From: Thalia democratica
Taxonomy: Eukaryota
Length of the DNA: 64,000 nt
Direction: 5' to 3'
Assembly: GCA_965202585.1 (NCBI GenBank)
Contig: OZ241831.1
Span: forward strand, 37,386,001-37,450,000
The notes beneath the pieces were generated by a model. It saw only the letters and a list, made by a program, of their open reading frames with translations. It searched no databases and had not been told where the DNA came from. Position numbers and translations under genes: made by a program. Each line of letters starts with the position of its first letter. The stretch's first letter is position 1. Positions 3,892-61,548 of the stretch are shown in pieces.

Positions 3892-4790
3892 GTTAGGTTT
3901 ATAAAGCTAAGTGGTTTATACCAATGCTTAAAATATTGTTATTGCTTTTTTATAAATTATTTTTTTCAAGGTTTATAAAAAAACACTATATATTTTTGTT
4001 ATAACTTTATTACTATTATTATTGCAAGTTTATTGTCCATATTATGGACTAAGGCATCAAAACCCAGGCCATTTTTACAGACATGCATCTTAGAAATACA
4101 AATAACGAAATAAATCTAAATATATCTTTAAATAAACTTAAGCACTCAAAAGCTAAATTTCCCAACTTTTTTAGTCAACTTTATAGAAACTAGTTGTTCT
4201 AAAACAATCATTTTGTTTTTATTGTAAACGTAATTTGTAGACAAAATAATTATTGTTATCATTTTTCATATTACATTACAAATACATCTATTTATGGTCT
4301 ATAATTTTTGTGTTTTGTTAGAGTTTTAATACATACCTTTGTCAGTTTAAGTTATAGTTATTTGATCACAAAAATGTTTTACCGTTATATAACTACGTTT
4401 AATGTTATTTCTTCATATTTCAAAAACTTTTTTATTCGACGATTTTCGTTCACAAATTTATCAAGAGCTCTGCAATAAGCGTATAACTATCATTTAAAAC
4501 CACGCTAATTAGCTAAAACATTACTACTACTGCTACTAGTAGTGGTAGTAGTATAGAAAACGTCGGCGAGAGTATACATAGCCTAAGCCTTGACTTTCGT
4601 AAGCCGTAAAATAAGCTCAAACTAACATTATGGTTTATTATACCTATCCGATCATCAGACCACAAGTCTACTGTAAACTGAGTCCTCACAAACACTTTAT
4701 TGTGCTTTATAATGAAAAAACCGTTTGCTAGTATTGGTCAGTGACGTCAGCTTTGTATTTTTCTGTGCAACGTTTAATATATTGTTCAAT

Positions 4791-5211: not shown

Positions 5212-5365
5212 GCTGGTACGCTCGTTTTGATTACGATCAGAGTAAATTTCAGCAAAAGTCTGATGATAAAATAATAATAACCTAAAACTTGAAGGTTTGT
5301 CTAACTGCATAATAACTACTAGATGCAGGATCTGTAGACTTTAGCCGATATTTTTTTGATCCAGC

Positions 5366-5854
5366 TATCTTGCCTTGGTAGCTATCAAATTTGGTTAAAT
5401 GACAATTCGACAATTCAATTTCTTAAAAAAAATATTTAAAATACAATATTTCAAAAAGTAATATAAATTAAAAGAAAAAATAAATATATATGTAGATCTT
5501 GTTAAAATCAAAACGCCACTTTTTATTTTTTGCCCATCTTGAATATTTTTAAAGATATTTTTATATTACAAAAATATCTATGTTTTTTATTTTATTTAGA
5601 TTATATATCAAAAAGTACTTAATTTTTTGCAAAATTAAAAAATTGGCTTGTAGATATTAATTGGACCTACATAAGTATGTTTAATATTCGACAAATATAC
5701 ATTAATATTCTATTGGTAAACCATTCATTTTTTTTAAGATTTAGAGTTGTCAGAATTTGAATTGTCCGAATTCGAATAGTCGTGCACCTATCAAATTTGC
5801 ATGAGCGTACAATATTGACGCTCATGCAAATTTGATAGCTACCGAGGCAAGATA
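5366..5854. mobile_element. MITE-like element with 28-bp terminal inverted repeats (family unassigned)
   Basis: tatcttgccttggtagctatcaaatttg (5366-5393) versus caaatttgatagctaccgaggcaagata (5827-5854): 1 mismatch. There is an internal 21-bp-arm hairpin at 5788-5838, and the same terminus recurs at 5184-5211. Confidence 0.65.
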
Positions 5855-18300: not shown

Positions 18301-20048
18301 CAGTTAAATCTTGTACGTATAAAAACTATTTATAATCAATAACCTATAAGTTTTAAGAACTTAAATTTAGTATAAGTATATAAACAGAAAGTAATACAAA
18401 CTTTATAACAAAGTTTTTCTTTTTAATTTGCTATTTGCGTGAGAAGAATTTTAACGTGCAAACTTTTATTTAACGTCACAAAATACTGAAATCACTTGCG
18501 GTAAACTTATTTTTGTACTATTTTTCGTAATTATAAAGAGCATTTACCCTTTAAATTAAAAAGAGAAGCTCTATTATTTTTTATCGTTTTAAAAGCAGAT
18601 TAAAAAAATCATTAAATTTCTTTTAAAATAGTTTGTAATTGCGATAAAGTATTAAAATAGTTTGTTATAAAAATAACGCAGGAAAACTAAATAATTAAAA
18701 GTTAATTTAAAGCAAAACAGTTTTTAGTACTCGTATAGTTTACTTTGTTAAACTATATATTTATACTGTTTACGTTTTTTTTTTAAACTTGCAATCTTTT
18801 TCTTTGAACAAAATGATTTAAGTTATAGAACTTAAGTTAAACTGAGTTCAATTTTTTAATTAAGCTCGTAATCCTAAGAAACCAATAACCCTTTATATTA
18901 AAAAACTAAAACATTTAAAGAAAACAGCTTTAATAAAAAAGTTGGTAATGCTTGAACATCTTACAGTTTTGAATATACAATACCTTTTTTCATTTTATTT
19001 TTGTACTTTAACAATTTTTTTATATTGTGAAAAGTAAGTTAAATTTTTTATAGTTTGCTCGCATTTAAACGTTGTTCTAAGAGTTTATTCGAAACTAGTA
19101 ACAAAAGTAAAAAACACAACCAGGTTAATATAGATCTTGTAAAAAAAAGATTTTTTTTTTAATTTAAAGCTTTTTAAGTTATAAATTTAATTAGAACTAA
19201 ATGTTGACAAAACAAATGTTTTGATATAATAAATATAAATGTACCAAAACAAAATTGTTTATTAAAACTTTATATAAAAGCGACAAGAAACAATCTACGT
19301 TAAAAATCAAACAAAACCTTAAATCAATTTTATTTAACAGCAGTTCATAAAACATGTTAAATTTAAAAAAGAATAAAATTTCATTGACGCAGCTATATTA
19401 TGAGATTATACAATGATTTTTAAAATTAAGTTGCATTTTCAATAATAATTTGTCAAAAATGTTTAATTTGCAGCATTAAAATATAAAATGTCTTCACAAA
19501 TATTCAGCAGCTGATAACTTTCTACTAACATTTCTATACTAAAGATGCTATTATTTTGTAAATCTTTTAAAAAACTACTTACAATAAACTGTATAAAATT
19601 TTAAGTATAAACTGTACATAAAAAACCATCAGCGATAAAAGCGAGAAAAAGATTGTAAAACGTAACCTTGCTTTCAAACACACAAAATACAATTTAAACA
19701 ATTGTAGGAAAGCTTAAGTACATTTTTTTATATTTTGCATAGTTAAATAGACTCATAAAAAGTTGTAATACCTCTATAGTAAAATGTTATACTTAATTCT
19801 AAACCTCAAGATTAAGAAATATAAGTTTATACTTAAAGCTTTACTAAAACACACAATAAAAAAACTTGAACTAAACATAACAAACCTTGAAATATATATA
19901 ATACATTGCACTATATAAATTTAACAATTTTAAACCTTTTAGAGTTTATTAAACATTATTTTTTCAGCTTGTAATTTGATACTTAAATTTAAACTTTTCG
20001 CGAAATGATGTCTTACATTTTACTATCTTTTATTTTTCGAATGGTATT

Positions 20049-20522
20049 TTATGATTGCTGCTTAGATTTTGTTGAACTAAAATCTGTGATGGACTCTTTC
20101 TGTTGATGCTGTTAGACTCCAACACAGTCAGTCCTAATAAAAGTATAGATAACAAAAGCGTAACTATAAAGTTAAATATTTTTTTTCTCTGATACATTTA
20201 AACTAAAGTTTTAAGTAGTTTAACCTTTTGATTTAAACCTAAACAGGTTTTAAAACAGACTTTATTAAACAAATTTCATTGAACAAAAGTTATATTTTGT
20301 TGATTTAATACGGTAAGTGTTTTAATTTACTAGCTAAAGTTAATAAAGCAATTTTCATAAACTAACATGGATGACTACTTTGACTTTCAGAAAAAGACTC
20401 TATCGAATTGAACGATTGTACAGATGAGTGGGGACTTCTAGTGGTAGAAGTTTCCGGCAATCTCGGTTTAATGACGGGATGCATATCAGTACTGTAATAA
20501 ACAGAACCGTACTACTGCATCT
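20049..20522 (-). pseudogene. Pax1/9: Pax1/9 copy C: 3' relic (terminal exon 20049-20133 and 3' part of the penultimate exon 20367-20522)
   Basis: Homologous to 33559-33647 and 33834-~34000. It carries CAG>TAG, a 9-nt deletion and a 4-nt frameshifting deletion. Homology ends abruptly at 20522, and the paired box is absent. Confidence 0.9.
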
Positions 20523-33558: not shown

Positions 33559-33647
33559 TTATGATTGCTCCTCAACTAGATTTTGTTGAACTAAAATCTG
33601 TGATGGACTCTTTCCATTGTTGCTGTTAGATTCCAAAACAGTCAATC
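33559..33647 (-). CDS. Pax1/9: Pax1/9 copy A terminal exon (downstream of the premature stop)
   Basis: tattAG acceptor, phase 1, LTVLESNSNNGKSPSQILVQQNLVEEQS*. Conserved in copies B and C. Confidence 0.75.
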
Positions 33648-33833
33648 CTAATAGTAAATACATAAATAAGATTCTGTAGCTTTCTAAGGTTTTAAATATA
33701 CTTTGTTTATTAATGAATTAAAACCAAGTTTTATAAAATCTAACTTTTTTGTATAAAACTGACTTAATGTTGTTGTAACAAAAAGTTTCTATTTTTAATG
33801 TTAAGATACATTAAACAACTTTTTCAAACTAAC

Positions 33834-34137
33834 TCTGTTGGCAGTTCTGACTTTCATAAAAGTCGTAAGCAGACTCCATCGAATTGAACGATTGTACGGA
33901 TGAATGGGGACTCCTAGTGGCAGAAGTTTCCGGCAATCCCGGTTGAATTACGGGATACATATCAGTACTGTAATAAGCAGAACCGTACTGCTGCATCTGT
34001 GGGTGCTGGATGTAGCTGCTAGGTGGCGCAAGGGGTGGTTGGTGGTGAAAATTGTGAGCATCGTAAACTGATTGGTTGTAGCAGGAATTTGATGGCTGCA
34101 CTGAAGTAAAAGCTGATGATGCTTGAGTTGGCGACCC
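33834..34137 (-). CDS. Pax1/9: Pax1/9 copy A penultimate exon (Ser/Pro/Tyr/Gln-rich C-terminal region)
   Basis: ttttttacAG acceptor (phase 0), 304 nt open (GSPTQASSAF...ESQNCQQ), GTTAGT donor (phase 1). Confidence 0.8.
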
Positions 34138-34363
34138 CTGTAAAAAATAAATTAAGTTGTCTCAAAAAATTTGCTATGAGTATAAAACACACTGTTAAGA
34201 TAAAAAGAACTTAAATTGTTATAAGTAAGTACATTTGTTGTCTTCCATAAATATTGAATTGACAAGACAATTATTCTATTTTGATTTGCTGTAACTAGTA
34301 AAAATACTGTTACTACACTTTGTTAGAAAAATTATTTGAAATTAGTTGAGTAAATTTACACAC

Positions 34364-34548
34364 TTATTCGCCCGATGATTTTATAGGTGTCAACTGTTTA
34401 TTCACTGAAGATTTCGTGTTGGAACTACAAGATGTAAGATCTGGTGCAAGTCCGTAATAAGCTGTTTTCCATTCTTCCTCGATTTTCGGAGCAAAATATA
34501 ACGCGTTGTTCGGCTGGTGATTGTACCCGTTAAATGGTGTTGTGTATC
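34364..34548 (-). CDS. Pax1/9: Pax1/9 copy A exon ending in a premature TAA
   Basis: ttttttaAG acceptor, YTTPFNGYNHQPNNALYFAPKIEEEWKTAYYGLAPDL...KSSGE-TAA|GTGTGT. Copy B has AAA at this codon. Confidence 0.8.
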
Positions 34549-34914
34549 CTTAAAAAACAGTTACAATTATTTTCATACCGCTAACTCTTAAATTTGTACT
34601 GATTATCGTAATTTAATTTTTCACGAAATAAGTGTAGGAAAATTACAACACCGAAAAGTTAGTAAATAAGAATTTAACTGAACTTAAGTTGTAAAAGTAT
34701 TTCTGTACAAACTGCAGTTACGCTTAATGTTGAAATTTTAAATTAGTTTTAAAGTATTAGTTTCTTACTATTTTTAGCACAGATATATTGTTACTTTTTC
34801 TTAATTTGCTTGTGCAAAATAAAAATTAGAAGGCGTAGTATTTTTTTAATTTTCAACCTCATTATATATAACATTACTAATTGAGGTTATATTTGATTAT
34901 AAATTGGAACTAAC

Positions 34915-35592
34915 TAATTTGCGAGTTGAGTATTTCAGGTATCGAGTGAGTGTAGAACTGAGACTGACTCGAACTTTTCATCGTGGAAGAATGTGAAACG
35001 TTTTCGAATTTCTGCACAGAACTCTTCATCGACACCTGAGGAAAAATAAATCCTGAAGTGTCGTTTGCGCTGTACATCGAACTCGAGCTTTGATTGGTTG
35101 ATGGCTTAACATCAGTCTGATCGCATTTCTTCACTGCTTGCGGCGGGCTCTTTTTTGCTTTGTAATTAGGGTTGAGGGGGTTTTCGGGATGCAGCACATT
35201 GCCCACTTTGTTCCTCAAAATCCTGCTTATGGAGGAGACGGAGGGAACATTGAACTTGTCGCAAACCGTGTCGCTGAGCAACCGGTCCCTGATCTCCCAC
35301 GCGAATATGCCCGGGTCGCCCACCTTGTACTCTTTTATCTTTTCCACCACTTTCGGCGTGGTCACCCTCGGCTTGCTGCCCCCTATGGCGCCCGGCGCGA
35401 TGCTTCCGGTCTCGTTGAATCTGGCCAGGATCTTGCTGACGCAACCATGCGACACCCTCAGGTTTCGGCTGATGTCGCACGGTCGCACCCCCGTCTTGTG
35501 CAGTTCGATTATTTTCACTCGCATCTGGGTTGGCAGGGGTCGGCCGTTGACGAAAACTCCCCCCAATTGATTAACTTCCCCGTAGGAACTAC
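34915..35592 (-). CDS. Pax1/9: Pax1/9 (Pox-meso class) copy A: paired-domain and octapeptide exon
   Basis: [20 protein letters not shown]...[37 protein letters not shown] is a group I (Pax1/9/Poxm) paired domain. Octapeptide-like HSIPEILN, no homeodomain. tttcccAG acceptor, GTTAGT donor, phase 1-1. Confidence 0.95.
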
Positions 35593-37935: not shown

Positions 37936-38037
37936 TATAGTAGAACCTGAACAATTAGGCATAGTAGACATCATGTTTTGATTAGCTATGGGAGTAGAGA
38001 ATCCAATATGTTGCGGTTGTGTTGGGGAATGCAGCAT
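37936..38037 (-). CDS. Pax1/9: Candidate first coding exon of Pax1/9 copy A
   Basis: ATG-initiated MLHSPTQPQHIGFSTPIANQNMMSTMPNCSGSTI with a GTTAGT donor, conserved in position in copy B. It ends phase 0, whereas the paired exon needs phase 1 or 2, so the link is unresolved. Confidence 0.4.
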
Positions 38038-41000
38038 TTTCAAACTTTTGTCTCCTGATAAGTTTAGTCATTAGGTTCAGAAATTCGACTGAAGAATTTT
38101 TTCTAGACGAAATAAATATCATACATTTTTTGTTTATATGTTAGCTTTTTAAAATGAGCTTTTAAAAATTTAGTATAATTGAAAATATTTCCTTTTAAAA
38201 AATTTTTTTAAGTATGCATTGAAATTAGTTTTTTGCAAAAATATGTTAAAACAAAACTATACTATTAAAACAAAAGTTTTAAACGTTAAAGTTTACTAGT
38301 TAAATATAACAAATTAAATTAAAATATATAGAATAAAAAGTTAATATTAATTGAATTCACAAGTCTAATCTTTTTTTTTGTTAACTTACTTTATGAAGAC
38401 TTCCGAAGATCCTTTTAGTTCTCGGTTGCTAAAGTTATAGTATTAATCAATTTCTTATTTTGGAATGTGTGAAATTGCCTTTTTTACTTTGTTATGTCTC
38501 TCAATCCTTTTTTTTTCTTGCTCGCTCAATTTGTAAAATAAAAATAAAGATTCGTAAAGCTTTAAATAAGTTTAACTTAACATAAATTTCAAACAAATCT
38601 ATAAAGTTTTAATGCAACTGTAAAACACAAAATAAACAGCACATTAGACAAGTTAAAGATTTATAATAAGTCTTATGAAGTTTTTTCCAGTGAATACACA
38701 AACTATTCTAAACTATTTTAATTTAACCCGGTGAATACAAAGCTAGGTGTTACTAAAAATGTTTATAAAGTTAAAAGACATTATTAATAAGTAACTTTGT
38801 TATCTTTTATTAAATATGTTGCTCAAGATACTAAAAAAAGCACTTCTAACAAACACTACAGTGTTTAACAAGTCAAAACAAAGTTTTACTCTAATAAAAA
38901 ACTAGTTGATTATGAATGACATGTTAATAGTAAAACTATATTGTAACTGCATTATTCTTTTTAAACACTTTTTAAATACATTTAACTGTTATCCTCAACT
39001 TGCTTATGTAGTCTGACTTTTGTTTTATTTAAACACAACCATTCTTTTGAAAAGTAAATTCATTAAAGCTTGCTATCTGTTTAAAGAAACTTAAGCAAAG
39101 TTTACTACAAGTTCTACGTAGGCAATTATGTAAATATTTCCATTCTCAAAACTTGAACTAGCTTTCAGTATTAGAAACAAAGACTAATTTACATCTCAAT
39201 GCAAATAAAAGATTATCAAAAGGCGCCAAAAACTGCCAACATATATAAAAATTGTTGATTACTATTTTACCAAAATCTGGTTATTCAATCTAAACGACAA
39301 AATACTTAAAAGCTCAAATGTAGTTGTTATTAAGCTTTAAATAATCAATCAGTCAAAATTTACTGATATATAGTTCGTGGAACTTTTCTTTATTTTTAAA
39401 GAATTCTAAAAAATTAGATTAGTTTTTCTATTCACATTCCTACTCATTATTTATCATTTGTTCGATTTTATAAACTAACTTTAATTTGAATCAATCGACC
39501 TTCTAACCTTAATTCACAATAATTAAACAAACTTTAATATGTTTTATGTGTGTTTTTGGTTTTATATTAAAATAAGTTTACAAAAAAATATCTAAAACAT
39601 TTAAATATCAATGTTTTTGTCTAACACGAACTTCTAAAAATACAAAACGTTTTACCATAACAAAAGTATTTTCATAGTAATTTCGGAAAATCGACAAATT
39701 AAAAAACTCATTTAATTTTTATTTGTTTTTTCTAAAATATTTTTATTCAGTTTTAAATTAACAAAGTTTAATATTTAACAAAGTTTTAAGTTAACATATC
39801 TATTTATTATTTACAAAAGATTTTAAGAAGGATTAGTGAAAATCCACTTTAATTTTGTCACTTTTTTGCTGTTCGACATTAAAGCCTAACTTTTAGTAAT
39901 TTTAATTAGTTTTTTTTTTCATTTCTTTCACATTTAAATAAAGTTGACCATATAAGTAACTGATAATCATAAAATTAATCATAAAAGCTGAGTGAATATC
40001 CTATATATATTTTACGAGTTCAAAAGGAGGTCACGTTTTAATAGGTTATAATGATAAACCAAAACAAAATAAAACTATTTGTAAAAGAACTTAAAAGCGA
40101 AAAAAAGTTTGTTGAATTACCGTTATTTAGTAATCAGTTTGAGATAAACTAATACTCTTGCAAAAAAAATCAAACTAGTTAGATGAAACGATTTCTAATC
40201 TTTATAAGTGAATCAAAAGTCTCCTAACTGTAAACTACCTTCAGGTTTAAATGAAAAAAGTGAAACTTATGTCAACGTACTTGTAAATAGTGCTTTTTAA
40301 CAGTTTTTAATTAATCAAGATCAAAAGTTACATCAGTAGAATATTTTTCTAGGTTTTTATTAAGTTTGCTAACATATTTTGACTTTAGTTCTATTATTAG
40401 TATAATTAAGATAATAAAAGTTAATATTATGGTTTTTAATAATTTAATTTGTACTTTGCTACTTAAATAATTTTGTTAATAAACTAATTTAATCTAAATG
40501 TCTAATCGTTTCACCCTTTATACTTTATAAGGGTTTAGTGTACATTTTTTAAATCAAATCAAACGGTTGATTAAAAGTATGTATTCGTTTAAATATAGTT
40601 GATTACTCTTTAAACAATTTATCTCTAATATTAAGAAAAATAAACAAACGTACAGTTCTTTGAAAATTACACGTTCTATTTGATTGTTAATTAAATAAAA
40701 TAAATTGTTTTTATACTTAAAAAGAACCAAATATACAACGTAAGGAACACCTTATTTAACATTATTGTTTATAAAAAGCTACTTTTTTAGTTTACTTTCA
40801 AGTTTTATAATTCCTACTTACATAAATAAAAATAAAAATTTAACTGCCATATATACCAAACATGACTAGGTTATATAATAAATTCGTCAATAAAAATTTT
40901 TCTCAATATTTTTGAATTAATTTTAGTTCAACTGTTTTTAGCTAAATTAGGCTAGTTGTCATGATCACTAATTAAAATTATTTATAATATAATAAATAAA

Positions 41001-55737: not shown

Positions 55738-55826
55738 TTATGATTGCTGCTCAACTAGATTTTGTTGAACTAAAATCTGTGATGGACTCTTTCCATTGTT
55801 GCTGTTAGATTCCAAAACAGTCAATC
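55738..55826 (-). CDS. Pax1/9: Pax1/9 copy B terminal exon
   Basis: tattAG acceptor, phase 1, LTVLESNSNNGKSPSQILVQQNLVEQQS*. Confidence 0.8.
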
Positions 55827-56012
55827 CTAATAGTAAATACATAAAAAACTTTTTGTAACTTTCTAAGATTTTAAACATACTTTGTTCATTAATGAATTAA
55901 AACCAAATTTTATAAAATCCAACTTTTTTGTATAAAACTGACTTAATGTTGTAGTAACAAAAACTTTCTATTTCTAATGTCAAGATACATTAAACAACTT
56001 TTTCAAACTAAC

Positions 56013-56316
56013 TCTGTTGGCTGTTCTGACTTTCAGAAAAGTCGTAAGCAGACTCAATCGAATTGAACGATTGTACGGATGAGTGGGGACTCCTAGTGGC
56101 AGAAGCTTCTGGCAATCCCGGTTGAATTACGGGATACATATCAGTACTGTAATAAGCAGAACCGTACTGCTGCATCTGTGGGTGCTGGATGTAGCTGCTA
56201 GGTGGCGCAAGGGGTGGTTGGTGGTGAAAATTGTGAGCATCGTAAACTGATTGGTTGTAGCAGGAATTTGATGGCTGCACTGAAGTAAAAGCTGATGATG
56301 CTTGAGTTGGCGACCC
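56013..56316 (-). CDS. Pax1/9: Pax1/9 copy B penultimate exon
   Basis: 304 nt, phase 0-1, GSPTQASSAF...ESQNSQQ, AG and GTTAGT sites. Part of ORF 56008-56370. Confidence 0.85.
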
Positions 56317-56477
56317 CTGTAAAAATAAATTAAGTTGTCTTAAAAATTTTGCTTTGAGTATAAAACACACTGTTAAGAGAAAAAGAACTTTAATTGCTAT
56401 AAGTAATTACATTTGCTGTCTTCCATAAATATTGAATTGACAAGAAAAGTATCTTTTAGTTAAGTAAATTTACACAC

Positions 56478-56662
56478 TTTTTCGCTCGATGATTTTATAG
56501 CTGTCAACTGTTTGTTCACTGAAGATTTCGCGTTAGAATTACAAGATGTAAGATCTGGTGCAAGTCCGTAATAAGCTGTTTTCCATTCTTCCTCGATTTT
56601 CGGAGCAAAATATAACGCGTTGTTCGGCTGGTGATTGTACCCGTTAAATGGTGTTGTGTATC
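56478..56662 (-). CDS. Pax1/9: Pax1/9 copy B internal exon (open)
   Basis: 185 nt, phase 1-0, ends ...KSSSEK|GTGTGT and joins the next exon in frame. Confidence 0.85.
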
Positions 56663-57007
56663 CTTAAAAACAGTTACAATTATTTTTATACAGCTAATTT
56701 TTAAATTTGTACTGATTATCGTAATTTAATTTTTCACGAAAATCAGAAGTTAGTAAACAAGAACAAGACTAAACTTAAGTTGTAAAAGTATTTCTGTACA
56801 AACTGCAGTTACGCTTAATGTTGAATTTTCAAACTAGTTTTAAAGTATTAGTTTCTTACAATTTTTAAGCACAGATATATTTTTACTTTTTCTTAACTTG
56901 CTTGTGCAAAATAAAAATTAGAAGGTGTAGTATATTTCAATTTTCAACCTCATATTCTGTAAGAACTTACTAATTGAGGTTATATTTCATTATAAATTGG
57001 AACTAAC

Positions 57008-57685
57008 TAATTTGCGAGTTGAGTATTTCGGGTATCGAGTGAGTGTAGAACTGAGACTGACTCGAACTTTTCATCGTGGAAGAATGTGAAACGTTTTCGA
57101 ATTTCTGCACAGAACTCTTCATCGACACCTGAGGAAAAATAAATCCTGAAGTGTCGTTTGCGCTGTACATCGAACTCGAGCTTTGATTGGTTGATGGCTT
57201 AACATCAGTCTGATCGCATTTCTTCACTGCTTGCGGCGGGCTCTTTTTTGCTTTGTAATTAGGGTTGAGGGGGTTTTCGGGATGCAGCACATTGCCCACT
57301 TTGTTCCTCAAAATCCTGCTTATGGAGGAGACGGAGGGAACATTGAACTTGTCGCAAACCGTGTCGCTGAGCAACCGGTCCCTGATCTCCCACGCGAATA
57401 TGCCCGGGTCGCCCACCTTGTACTCTTTTATCTTTTCCACCACTTTCGGCGTGGTCACCCTCGGCTTGCTGCCCCCTATGGCGCCCGGCGCGATGCTTCC
57501 GGTCTCGTTGAATCTGGCCAGGATCTTGCTGACGCAACCATGCGACACCCTCAGGTTTCGGCTGATGTCGCACGGCCGCACCCCCGTCTTGTGTAGCTCG
57601 ATTATTTTCACTCGCATCTGGGTTGGCAGGGGTCGGCCGTTGACGAAAACTCCCCCCAATTGATTCACTTCTCCGTAGGAGCTAC
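57008..57685 (-). CDS. Pax1/9: Pax1/9 (Pox-meso class) copy B: paired-domain and octapeptide exon
   Basis: Protein identical to the copy A exon (7 nucleotide differences, all synonymous). ttttctAG acceptor, GTTAGT donor. Confidence 0.95.
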
Positions 57686-60061
57686 CTAGAAAATTAATAA
57701 TAAACTATGTGTTGAAGTTATAAAGAAAAATTAAAAAGCAGGTTATTGATATGACATAAGTTCACATTTGATAGGACTTTAGCTTTAAACTTCTTTTGTA
57801 TTGTATAAACTTGTATTATTTTATATATTTATATACTTAAAATAGAAATAATTTTACTGAGTCGATTGCCAAAAGTCCCATTAAAAGTTTTAATGATCTT
57901 TCGCAAATGTAAAGTTCAAAAATAAAAGTACATATGCTTTATACAAATTTAACCTATAACTTTCAATTGTTTAGATTTTTAATTGATTAACATTTGTACA
58001 CAATTACACTAAAAAAACATTATGAGCTAATCATGATTTTTTTTTGTCCAGAACGCTGTTAGTGCAAAAAAATTGTTTAATCGACAGTGAGGATTTTAAT
58101 TATAGTCGCCACCACACGCAACAAGCACTTGTGTTGAAATTTTAATCCAATCAAATATTTGAGGGAAGATTTTCGTCTACACACAGGTAAGTAGTTTGTC
58201 GAGTGATTTATAAGTATGACGTATAACTGATGAAAATTTTACACGCTAAACAAACACTCGTGCTAGCAAGGGTCGTAAGTTGATAGCTTTTTTGTGTTTT
58301 TACCGATGCCTTTTAATTTATGATGTAAACAAAGCTACTTGTTTTTAATGGAAAATTTTTACCGAAGTTGGCAGATAGCCGAAAAGGAAGTTATTTGTTT
58401 TAAACGTTAATAAAGACCACCCTTAACAATGGCAGCGGTAATTAATCCGATTTGTACTTGTTTGCTTTAAGCTTTTGTTTCTTACCTACATTGTTTTCTG
58501 CTTCATTTTTTCTTATACGTTGTTTTTGTAAAGAACTTATATAGTTTGCATATGTTTAAATTTTAACTAAGTTCTTTTATGGTACTGTACACTTAACAAC
58601 TTCTAAAAACTAGAAAAGCTAGCTTGCATGATAAGTGGAAAAGTGTAAATAAATTTATTGATTATACTACAAAATAAGATAAACTAAAGCTCGTGTTATG
58701 AATGTTTGATTTATATTGGCCAAAACAAAAATATGCAGCGTATCGCATTTAATGCAAGATAATTTTTATTTGCAGTCAAAAATGGCGATAACTGCTCACT
58801 TTGCGAGAATTTTTAATTCAAAAGTTTCAATCAAAAACTTCATTTATTACAAACTTCAAATTTTATTTTGCACCTGCAAGTAGCTCAAATTACCAGCAAA
58901 ATTTCTTTTTATTAACTCGACACTTTTCACCTTTCAAAAGTCAGAACTCATTAGTATTGCAAAAGACGGCCATTGTTATGAAATCATCCGAAACGAATTT
59001 TTTCTTACGTCACGAATTCAACCCCCATTGAACGATTTGTCTCCCCATTTTGTGCTTCTCAAATTCGTGCACCCCAGATTGGAAATAATAGAAAACCTTT
59101 CAACACGTGAGTGTGAATAGAATTACCGAAACGACAAATAAAACAGATAAACTTTTATACAACGCAAGGTAATGTTTCTAAATAAACATTTTAAAAGACT
59201 TTGTTGAACTTCAGTTAAAAAAAAAATTATGCTTTTTACCCAAAATAAATCTTCTTTATATTACATTTTCTCAACGAGTGTTTTAATTATCAAATTAAAA
59301 CTATTTCTGCAACTCGAAACTTTAAAAAGCCTAGCTTTCAGGTTTAGAGTGTTCGTTTCTTAAACGATTTTATATTTATAAGTATTATAAAAATGGTTTA
59401 ACAAAAGTTCAATTATATATTTTAGTGAATAGAGACCAAAGTAAAAATATTTCTTAACTTAGATATAAACTTATTGAATATTTTATTTTCTCTCAGTATT
59501 TTAAGTAATTTCTTAAGTTAAAATTTAATTTGTTTGACTATTAGTTATCATTTTTCAACATTTTTAGTTTATTTGAGCACTGATCAGCTTATTAAGCGAA
59601 ACATTTTTCGTAGAATAAACTTTTAAGTCATTGTAATTTTTTTCTCTTTTTATAAAACACAAATCTCTAACGTTTTTTAACCACAAAACGTAAAATAATT
59701 AAAAAATGTGTGGTAACTACTTTGGTCATTAAAAAAAAGTATTATCATTTTAAAACCTGGATATGACATTAAACTGTATCCTGGTGTACACTCGATAACC
59801 GAAAAGTTTTTCATAGACCAGATCTTTGGACAAAATTTTTAGGGTTTTTCTTTCGTTCAAAAAACAATTAACCGAACAAAACTCTATTATATACAATGAC
59901 TATAAACAACCATACTGTTATTAATGACTGTACACTTTTGTTTTTTTTTATTTAAGACAAATCTAACAACCAGTAAGAATTTGAAGTAATTTGAAGTAAT
60001 TTGAAAATTTTGGTACCAGCTTTCAAATAGTTGTTATAAAGTATTTTACATAATTACTAAC

Positions 60062-60163
60062 TATAGTAGAACCTAAACAATTAGGCATGAGAGACATCAT
60101 GTTTTGATTAGCTATGAGAGAAGAGAATTCAATATGTTGCGGTTGTGTTGGGGAATGCAGCAT
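60062..60163 (-). CDS. Pax1/9: Candidate first coding exon of Pax1/9 copy B
   Basis: MLHSPTQPQHIEFSSLIANQNMMSLMPNCLGSTI|GTTAGT, with an extra in-frame ATG at 60169. Same phase problem as in copy A. Confidence 0.4.
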
Positions 60164-61166: not shown

Positions 61167-61548
61167 TAGTGATGTACCGGACCCACAATTTTGGAACCCG
61201 GATCTGGACTTTTTTTTTCAAATTATAATCCTGCCGGAACCGGATCCGGACTTTTTTTTTTAATTAGAATCCGACCGGAACCGGATCCGGACTTTTTTTC
61301 AAATTAGAATCCGGCCGGAACCGGACCCGGACTTTTTTTTCAAATTAGAGTCCGGCCGGAACCGGATCCGGACTTTTTTTTCAAATTAGAATCCGGCCAG
61401 AACCGGACCCGAACTTTTTTTTCAAATTAGAGTCCTTCCGGAACCGGATTCGGACTTTTTTTTCAAATTAGAATCCGGCCGGATCCGGATATCAGACAAA
61501 AATGGCAATATCCGGCCGGACCCGGATAGTGAGTCCGGTACATCACTA
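61167..61548. mobile_element. hAT-superfamily MITE (382 bp) with an internal ~40-bp tandem array
   Basis: 20-bp TIRs tagtgatgtaccggacccac / gtgagtccggtacatcacta (1 mismatch), perfect 8-bp TSD attttaac, seven ccggatccggac(t)n-caaattagaatccggccggaa units. The empty site is in unit A at ~39030. Confidence 0.92.

Follow-up and report, generated by a model that had tools for sequence, protein, structure and literature searches.

Paired-box genes and their genomic context

The analysed stretch of DNA (hereafter the window; 64,000 nucleotides, C7:37386001-37450000) is very AT-rich, with a G+C content of approximately 22%, and contains two islands richer in G+C (34-36 kb and 56-58 kb). In each island a single minus-strand exon codes for a complete paired domain, and these exons belong to two genes, referred to as copies A and B. 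Both had been recognised in the preliminary description and are real, but the array to which they belong consists of five copies rather than two, and one of the five is plainly dead. A search of the genome placed them in tandem on C7, about 22 kb apart, with A and B in the window followed by C, D and E. The array lies in a Pax1/9-like cluster of about 600 kb (C7 36.92-37.51 Mb). At least a dozen more diverged paired-box matches (50-82% identity) are located within the same 600-kb stretch, and a few further ones were found on C355, C696, C5 and other contigs. We found no literature on arrays of Pax1/9 genes in thaliaceans, salps included.

The predicted protein matches the paired-domain family of Pfam (PF00292) with residues 3-126 aligned to positions 2-125 of the 125-position profile (E=4.1e-64). 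All copies and the relatives P0001, P0003, P0004 and P0010 carry the octapeptide HSIPEILN, which is encoded at the end of exon 2. No homeodomain was detected: neither exon 3 nor exon 4 gave any Pfam family at E<=0.1, and exon 5 encodes just 29 amino acids. Nearly all named matches are annotated as ‘paired box protein Pax-1’, with 74-81% identity over the paired domain. Judged by its domain, its octapeptide, the lack of a homeodomain and its best named matches, the gene is classified as Pax1/9-type. It resembles vertebrate PAX1/PAX9 and Drosophila Pox meso in the first three of these features and differs from them in its amplification to five tandem copies within a larger cluster, and in its lineage-specific tail, the elements of which (SSAFTSV, LTVLE) otherwise occur only in proteins from marine metagenomes and transcriptomes. 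Pax1/9 is normally a single-copy gene that patterns the pharynx, and its expansion at this locus is unusual.

Non-exon DNA differs between any two of the five copies by 6.7-8.8%, in a roughly star-like fashion, which identifies them as true, old paralogs and not haplotigs. The closest pair is A and E, and a 67-nt segment of intron 3 is common to these two and missing in B, C and D. We considered a haplotig or another false duplication and rejected it on account of the 7-9% non-exon divergence, the regular 22-kb period and the assembly itself, in which no second version (haplotig) of copy A was found.

Copy B (55738-60163, minus strand) is intact and encodes 448 amino acids in exons 60163-60073, 57685-57008, 56662-56478, 56316-56013 and 55826-55738; it has the same structure as copy A and lies approximately 22.1 kb further on. 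In B, D and E the reading frame is open from exon 2 to exon 5. Copy C (C7:37460000-37469999; exon 2 at 5259-5628 and exon 4 at 4243-4551 therein) is a pseudogene, in which a 308-nt frameshifting deletion in exon 2 has removed most of the paired box and a CAA codon in exon 4 has become TAA. Copies thus do die in this array. In copy E (C7:37505000-37514000) the homology to A extends upstream of exon 2 for about 1.5 kb, and no first exon was found in the 3.9 kb of upstream DNA examined. The first exon or the promoter of E may differ from those of the other copies, though the transcript recovered from run X5 (see below) is of E type.

Exon structure of copy A

The gene model of copy A rests on splice signals, on comparison with the relatives P0003 and P0010, and on RNA contigs; all its exons lie on the minus strand. 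Exon 1 (37947-38037) is a prediction: it begins with an ATG at 38037, reads MLHSPTQPQHIGF... and ends in phase 1 at the donor CAG/GTTCTA, and its N-terminus resembles that of P0003 (MLQSPTQMQQIGF). Exon 2 (34915-35592) encodes the paired domain, the linker and the octapeptide HSIPEILN and ends in phase 1 at the donor A/GTTAGT. Exon 3 (34364-34548, 185 nt) contains the conserved motif FAPKIEEEWKTAYYG, ends in phase 0 and has a stop at its end. Exon 4 (33834-34137, 304 nt), which opens with GGG at 34137, is open in this frame up to a donor A/GTTAGT at 33833, placed directly before an in-frame TAG.

That TAG (33831-33829) looks like the stop codon of exon 4 and is in fact intronic. A fifth exon is revealed by contigs from two runs, X5 and X7, in which 33834 is joined to 33647 across a GT..AG intron; the junctions 34915/34548 and 34364/34137 are present in a spliced, E-type RNA contig of X5. 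Exon 5 (33559-33647) encodes RLTVLESNSNNGKSPSQILVQQNLVEEQS followed by the real stop (33561-33559) and is the true final coding exon. Its product ends in LTVLE, the sequence that also terminates relative P0003. With the frame traced across all exons in this way, the start codon, every splice site and the downstream frame were found intact in copy A. The corrected five-exon model is directly useful for annotation.

In all copies the 30 codons of exon 1 evolve rapidly. Between A and B seven of its 91 nucleotides differ, and these differences touch six codons, five of them with an amino-acid change. This makes exon 1 the best copy-specific tag for expression work.

A private nonsense codon at the end of exon 3

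The last codon of exon 3 in copy A, codon 318 (34364-34366), is TAA, whereas B, C, D and E all have AAA at this place. In A the exon ends ...TCG GGC GAA TAA and is followed by gtgtgt, so that 34369-34358 read GAA TAA/GTGTGT; in B it ends ...TCG AGC GAA AAA before the same gtgtgt, and the difference that creates the stop is at 34366. The preliminary description had given these letters and coordinates correctly to the base. The change is a substitution inside a run of five A.

The predicted product of copy A has 317 amino acids, compared with 448 in intact B. It retains the paired domain and octapeptide and lacks 131 residues, in agreement with the earlier estimate of about 130. The lost tail comprises islands (SSAF-S/T-x-V, SSYNQ and LTVLE) that are conserved in relatives of about 68% identity, which suggests that the tail matters in the intact copies. 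In a spliced message the stop would lie 304 nt before the last exon-exon junction, compared with the >50-55 nt that the exon-junction rule asks for. Copy A had earlier been named a candidate for nonsense-mediated decay, and with the fifth exon supplied by the RNA contigs its anatomy fits. Escape from decay, with exon 4 as the last exon, was also considered and was overturned by exon 5 (joint 33834/33647).

The upstream GTGAAT and the canonical donor

An in-frame GTGAAT (34400-34405, minus strand; Val305-Asn306) deserves separate treatment, as it had been proposed to act as a cryptic donor that bypasses the stop. The layout of this proposal is accurate: TCA/GTGAAT lies 42 nt upstream of the exon end in phase 0, its GT occupies 34405-34404, copy B has GTGAAC, and a splice from 34406 to 34137 would drop exactly 42 nt (14 codons), the stop included. 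The rescue suggested on this basis is not supported. GTGAAT is common to A, C and E, with GTAAAT in D, and is consequently ancestral, the GTGAAC of B being derived. By comparison of the five copies it is an ancestral Val-Asn codon pair that has been neither gained nor strengthened in A.

The canonical donor of intron 3, GTGTGT (34358-34363, minus strand), is identical in all five copies, and in A the only change is at -3, from A to T. It matches the consensus at six of nine positions in A and at seven of nine in B, against five of nine for the GTGAAT site, which lacks G at -1 and +5. The predicted U1 duplex energies, a heuristic in which the register was not enforced, are -3.0 kcal/mol for GTGAAT and -5.1 (A) and -4.2 kcal/mol (B) for the canonical donor. 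In A the alternative donor is not strengthened, and the canonical one, its core unchanged, is not weaker in its predicted U1 duplex. GTGAAT is the only phase-0 GT in exon 3; every Val codon is a phase-0 GT, so that one within the last 20 codons is unsurprising, and the presence of such a site is no more than chance would give.

Contigs from DNA and RNA runs

The stretch occurs in marine metagenomes, in metatranscriptomes and in sequencing runs of two coded organisms. We compared the contigs of four of them over 33600-35200: X1 and X3 (DNA-like), X5 (RNA) and X7 (metatranscriptome). X5 was assigned to RNA as a 47-Mb contig set that includes a spliced contig. This contig, 1573 nt in length, has the junctions 34915/34548, 34364/34137 and 33834/33647; it matches copy E at 34448, 34514, 34063, 34001 and 33979, and the sites private to A are reversed in it. 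By its diagnostic letters it is an E-type transcript. In X7, loose ends reading ...ATCGAGCGAAAAA are joined to exon 4, which gives AAA and the canonical junction. The spliced contigs, derived from the E-type copy and from wild variants, all have AAA and all use the canonical junction.

Neither the joint 34406/34137 nor 34915/33647 occurs in X1, X3, X5 or X7, the RNA contigs at these places being non-A. Likewise, none of the four runs has a contig with the letter of A at 34372, 34387, 34417 or 34425. The interval 34342-34411 is covered solely by the majority, non-A path in all four, and the T of 34366 is accordingly absent there; the depths across 34302-34409 are wholly accounted for by that path. 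Since Logan contigs lose minority paths where copies are nearly identical, the missing A path is not evidence against A. A depth of 37.8 in the bin 34302-34355 was at first a candidate for an A-specific signal and was rejected, as it equals the 14-nt overhang of a shared contig (14/54 x 145.7). An exact A-type contig does exist in X1: it extends over 34120-34259, spans several A-private intron sites and has a depth of 38.6, i.e., single-copy, whereas shared stretches reach about 200. Copy A is hence present in the DNA of this run.

Pattern scans of metagenomes with the end of exon 3 carrying either allele, and with the conserved core of exon 3, gave no matches. A protein search with exon 4 of A, aimed at open reading frames downstream of the stop, returned no candidates.

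Gene conversion and private substitutions

The paired box is strongly constrained in all copy pairs (dN/dS of about 0-0.05). A 545-nt tract of exon 2 (34938-35482 in A; 57031-57575 in B) has the same sequence in copies A and B and almost the same in E, while it has a dS of about 0.13 against D and the introns differ by about 8%. This contrast points to gene conversion, and the intact paired box of A therefore says little on the constraint acting on A itself. The tract ends approximately 570 nt upstream of the TAA. Exon 2 of A has one private change, and it is synonymous.

A different picture is seen in exons 3-5, where changes were polarised by the majority of the five copies. Copy A has one synonymous, six nonsynonymous and one nonsense private change; the dead copy C has four, six and one. 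Nonsense changes are absent from the other three, which have three synonymous and two nonsynonymous (B), three and two (D), and four and one (E). Seven nonsynonymous or nonsense changes against one synonymous in A compare with five against ten in B, D and E together (Fisher p=0.027, uncorrected for the choice of region and with eight events in A). The nonsynonymous changes of A are N298S, A301T and A311P before the stop and S412Y, S417C and Q446E after it. Relative to non-exon DNA, the private rate in exons 3-5 is 0.54 in A and 0.66 in C, against 0.25-0.35 in B, D and E. The numbers are small, and the pattern hints at relaxed constraint on the C-terminal half of A over a sizeable part of its history, and not at a rescued tail under selection. 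The openness of the downstream exons had earlier been taken to fit either rescue or a very recent mutation. However, just four private substitutions, three of them nonsynonymous, have accumulated in the 393 nt after the stop, and with so few an open frame is expected by chance.

Evolutionary state of copy A

With five copies, one of them plainly dead, redundancy and birth-and-death evolution provide the natural frame for the stop. We consider it probable that copy A is a redundant tandem paralog with a real nonsense mutation and at an early stage of decay, spliced in the canonical way and with its paired box kept by conversion. In such a course of events a private AAA to TAA change would have arisen at codon 318 in copy A of the five-copy Pax1/9 array. 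For the A pre-mRNA, if made, we infer splicing at the unchanged canonical donor, as in the sister copies. The resulting message, with its stop 304 nt ahead of the last junction, would either be degraded or give the 317-amino-acid protein, which would keep the paired domain, the octapeptide and FAPKIEEEWK and lose the conserved 131-residue tail. This loss would be tolerated with three intact sister copies nearby; the C-terminal half would now be in early pseudogenisation, and gene conversion from the neighbours would keep the paired box pristine. A disabling mutation in the company of intact paralogs, as expected of a young pseudogene, is provided by the TAA that the assembly gives in A only.

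It is unlikely that the stop is not fixed in the species and represents either an error of the assembly consensus or an allele that the sequenced individual carries privately or in the heterozygous state. Such a reading would agree with the lack of any contig from X1, X3, X5 or X7 with the A letters at the four sites around the stop, and hence at 34366, and with the metagenome pattern scans that gave no match; these absences mean little, however, as Logan contigs drop minority paths. Errors of long reads in homopolymer runs are usually changes of length, while the change at 34366 is a substitution in the A5 run. Furthermore, the TAA sits in a haplotype with several other substitutions private to A, and an exact A-type contig adjoins it in intron 3 at single-copy depth. 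That copy A encodes a functional truncated paralog, a stable 317-amino-acid Pax1/9 protein with a competing, repressing or dominant-negative effect on its sisters, we regard as unlikely. Its start codon, splice sites and paired box are intact, the private change in exon 2 is synonymous, the truncation point retains the octapeptide and the conserved FAPKIEEEWKTAYYG motif, and the array would provide full-length partners. But gene conversion with B and E accounts for the clean paired box, and the 20 codons before the stop, which such a protein would retain, have three private nonsynonymous changes and no synonymous one, as fits relaxed constraint. With its stop 304 nt ahead of the final junction, an A message would tend to be degraded if the exon-junction rule applies, and no A transcript is found among the RNA contigs of X5 and X7, although contigs drop minority variants. 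The more specific scenario, in which A has been kept as a truncated Pax1/9 that tunes or opposes the full-length sisters of the same array, seems quite improbable; if true, A would be a genomically hard-wired dominant-negative isoform that originated from a nonsense mutation and not from alternative splicing.

Restoration of a nearly full-length protein by splicing, either through the donor at 34406/34405 or by joint skipping of exons 3 and 4, is in our view very improbable. Both routes keep the frame (42 nt; 185+304=489 nt), the exon 2 donor A/GTTAGT has the same phase as that of exon 4, exons 3 and 5 both start with GA, the 14 codons concerned show little conservation in P0003 and P0010, and the downstream exons are open. 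Against this, GTGAAT is ancestral, present also in copies without the stop, and has the weaker predicted U1 duplex; the E-type transcript also contains GTGAAT and is spliced at the canonical donor; neither of the two joints (34406 to 34137, 34915 to 33647) was seen in the four runs; and the region of A downstream of the stop has three nonsynonymous private changes and one synonymous. Skipping of exon 3 by itself was rejected as a rescue, since 185 nt is not a multiple of three.

Early decay of a redundant copy, the reading that we favour, resembles birth-and-death arrays in several respects: the copies are equally diverged, C is dead, A has a single nonsense codon and a neutral-like spectrum of changes, and conversion tracts are present. 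What differs is that the gene is a developmental transcription factor, usually found in one or two copies, and that the paired box of A is intact. In humans, where PAX9 is a single-copy gene, its nonsense and frameshift alleles cause tooth agenesis, chiefly through haploinsufficiency. Pax isoforms that are truncated at the C-terminus and lack the transactivation domain also exist. The predicted product of A is the same in kind, a paired domain without the C-terminal tail; unlike with human PAX9, three intact sister copies remain here, and the truncation is a prediction from sequence. The locus also resembles nonsense-associated altered splicing in having an in-frame GT upstream of a stop, the use of which could remove that stop, but here the canonical donor is undamaged, the alternative site has gained no strength in A, and the four runs contain no junction of this kind.

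Where five tandem copies are redundant, gene loss is expected to begin with just such a lone nonsense codon in one of them. Of greater value than the stop itself is its context: a large and actively turning-over Pax1/9 cluster in a pelagic marine animal, in which copy A would represent a dated intermediate between the intact B, D and E and the dead C. It would also exemplify gene conversion keeping a DNA-binding domain intact while the tail decays.

Other features near copies A and B

A G+C-rich minisatellite is located at 61193-61490, approximately 1 kb upstream of the start codon of copy B. It consists of 7.2 copies of a 41-nt unit (...GGAACCGGATCCGGAC followed by a run of T) and has no counterpart in the corresponding upstream region of copy A (38000-39500). 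A relic of the 3' end of the gene, some 13 kb downstream of A, was found at 20044-20139 and 20381-20522; it lacks exons 1-3, and its exon 5-like and exon 4-like parts are 88% and 86% identical, respectively.
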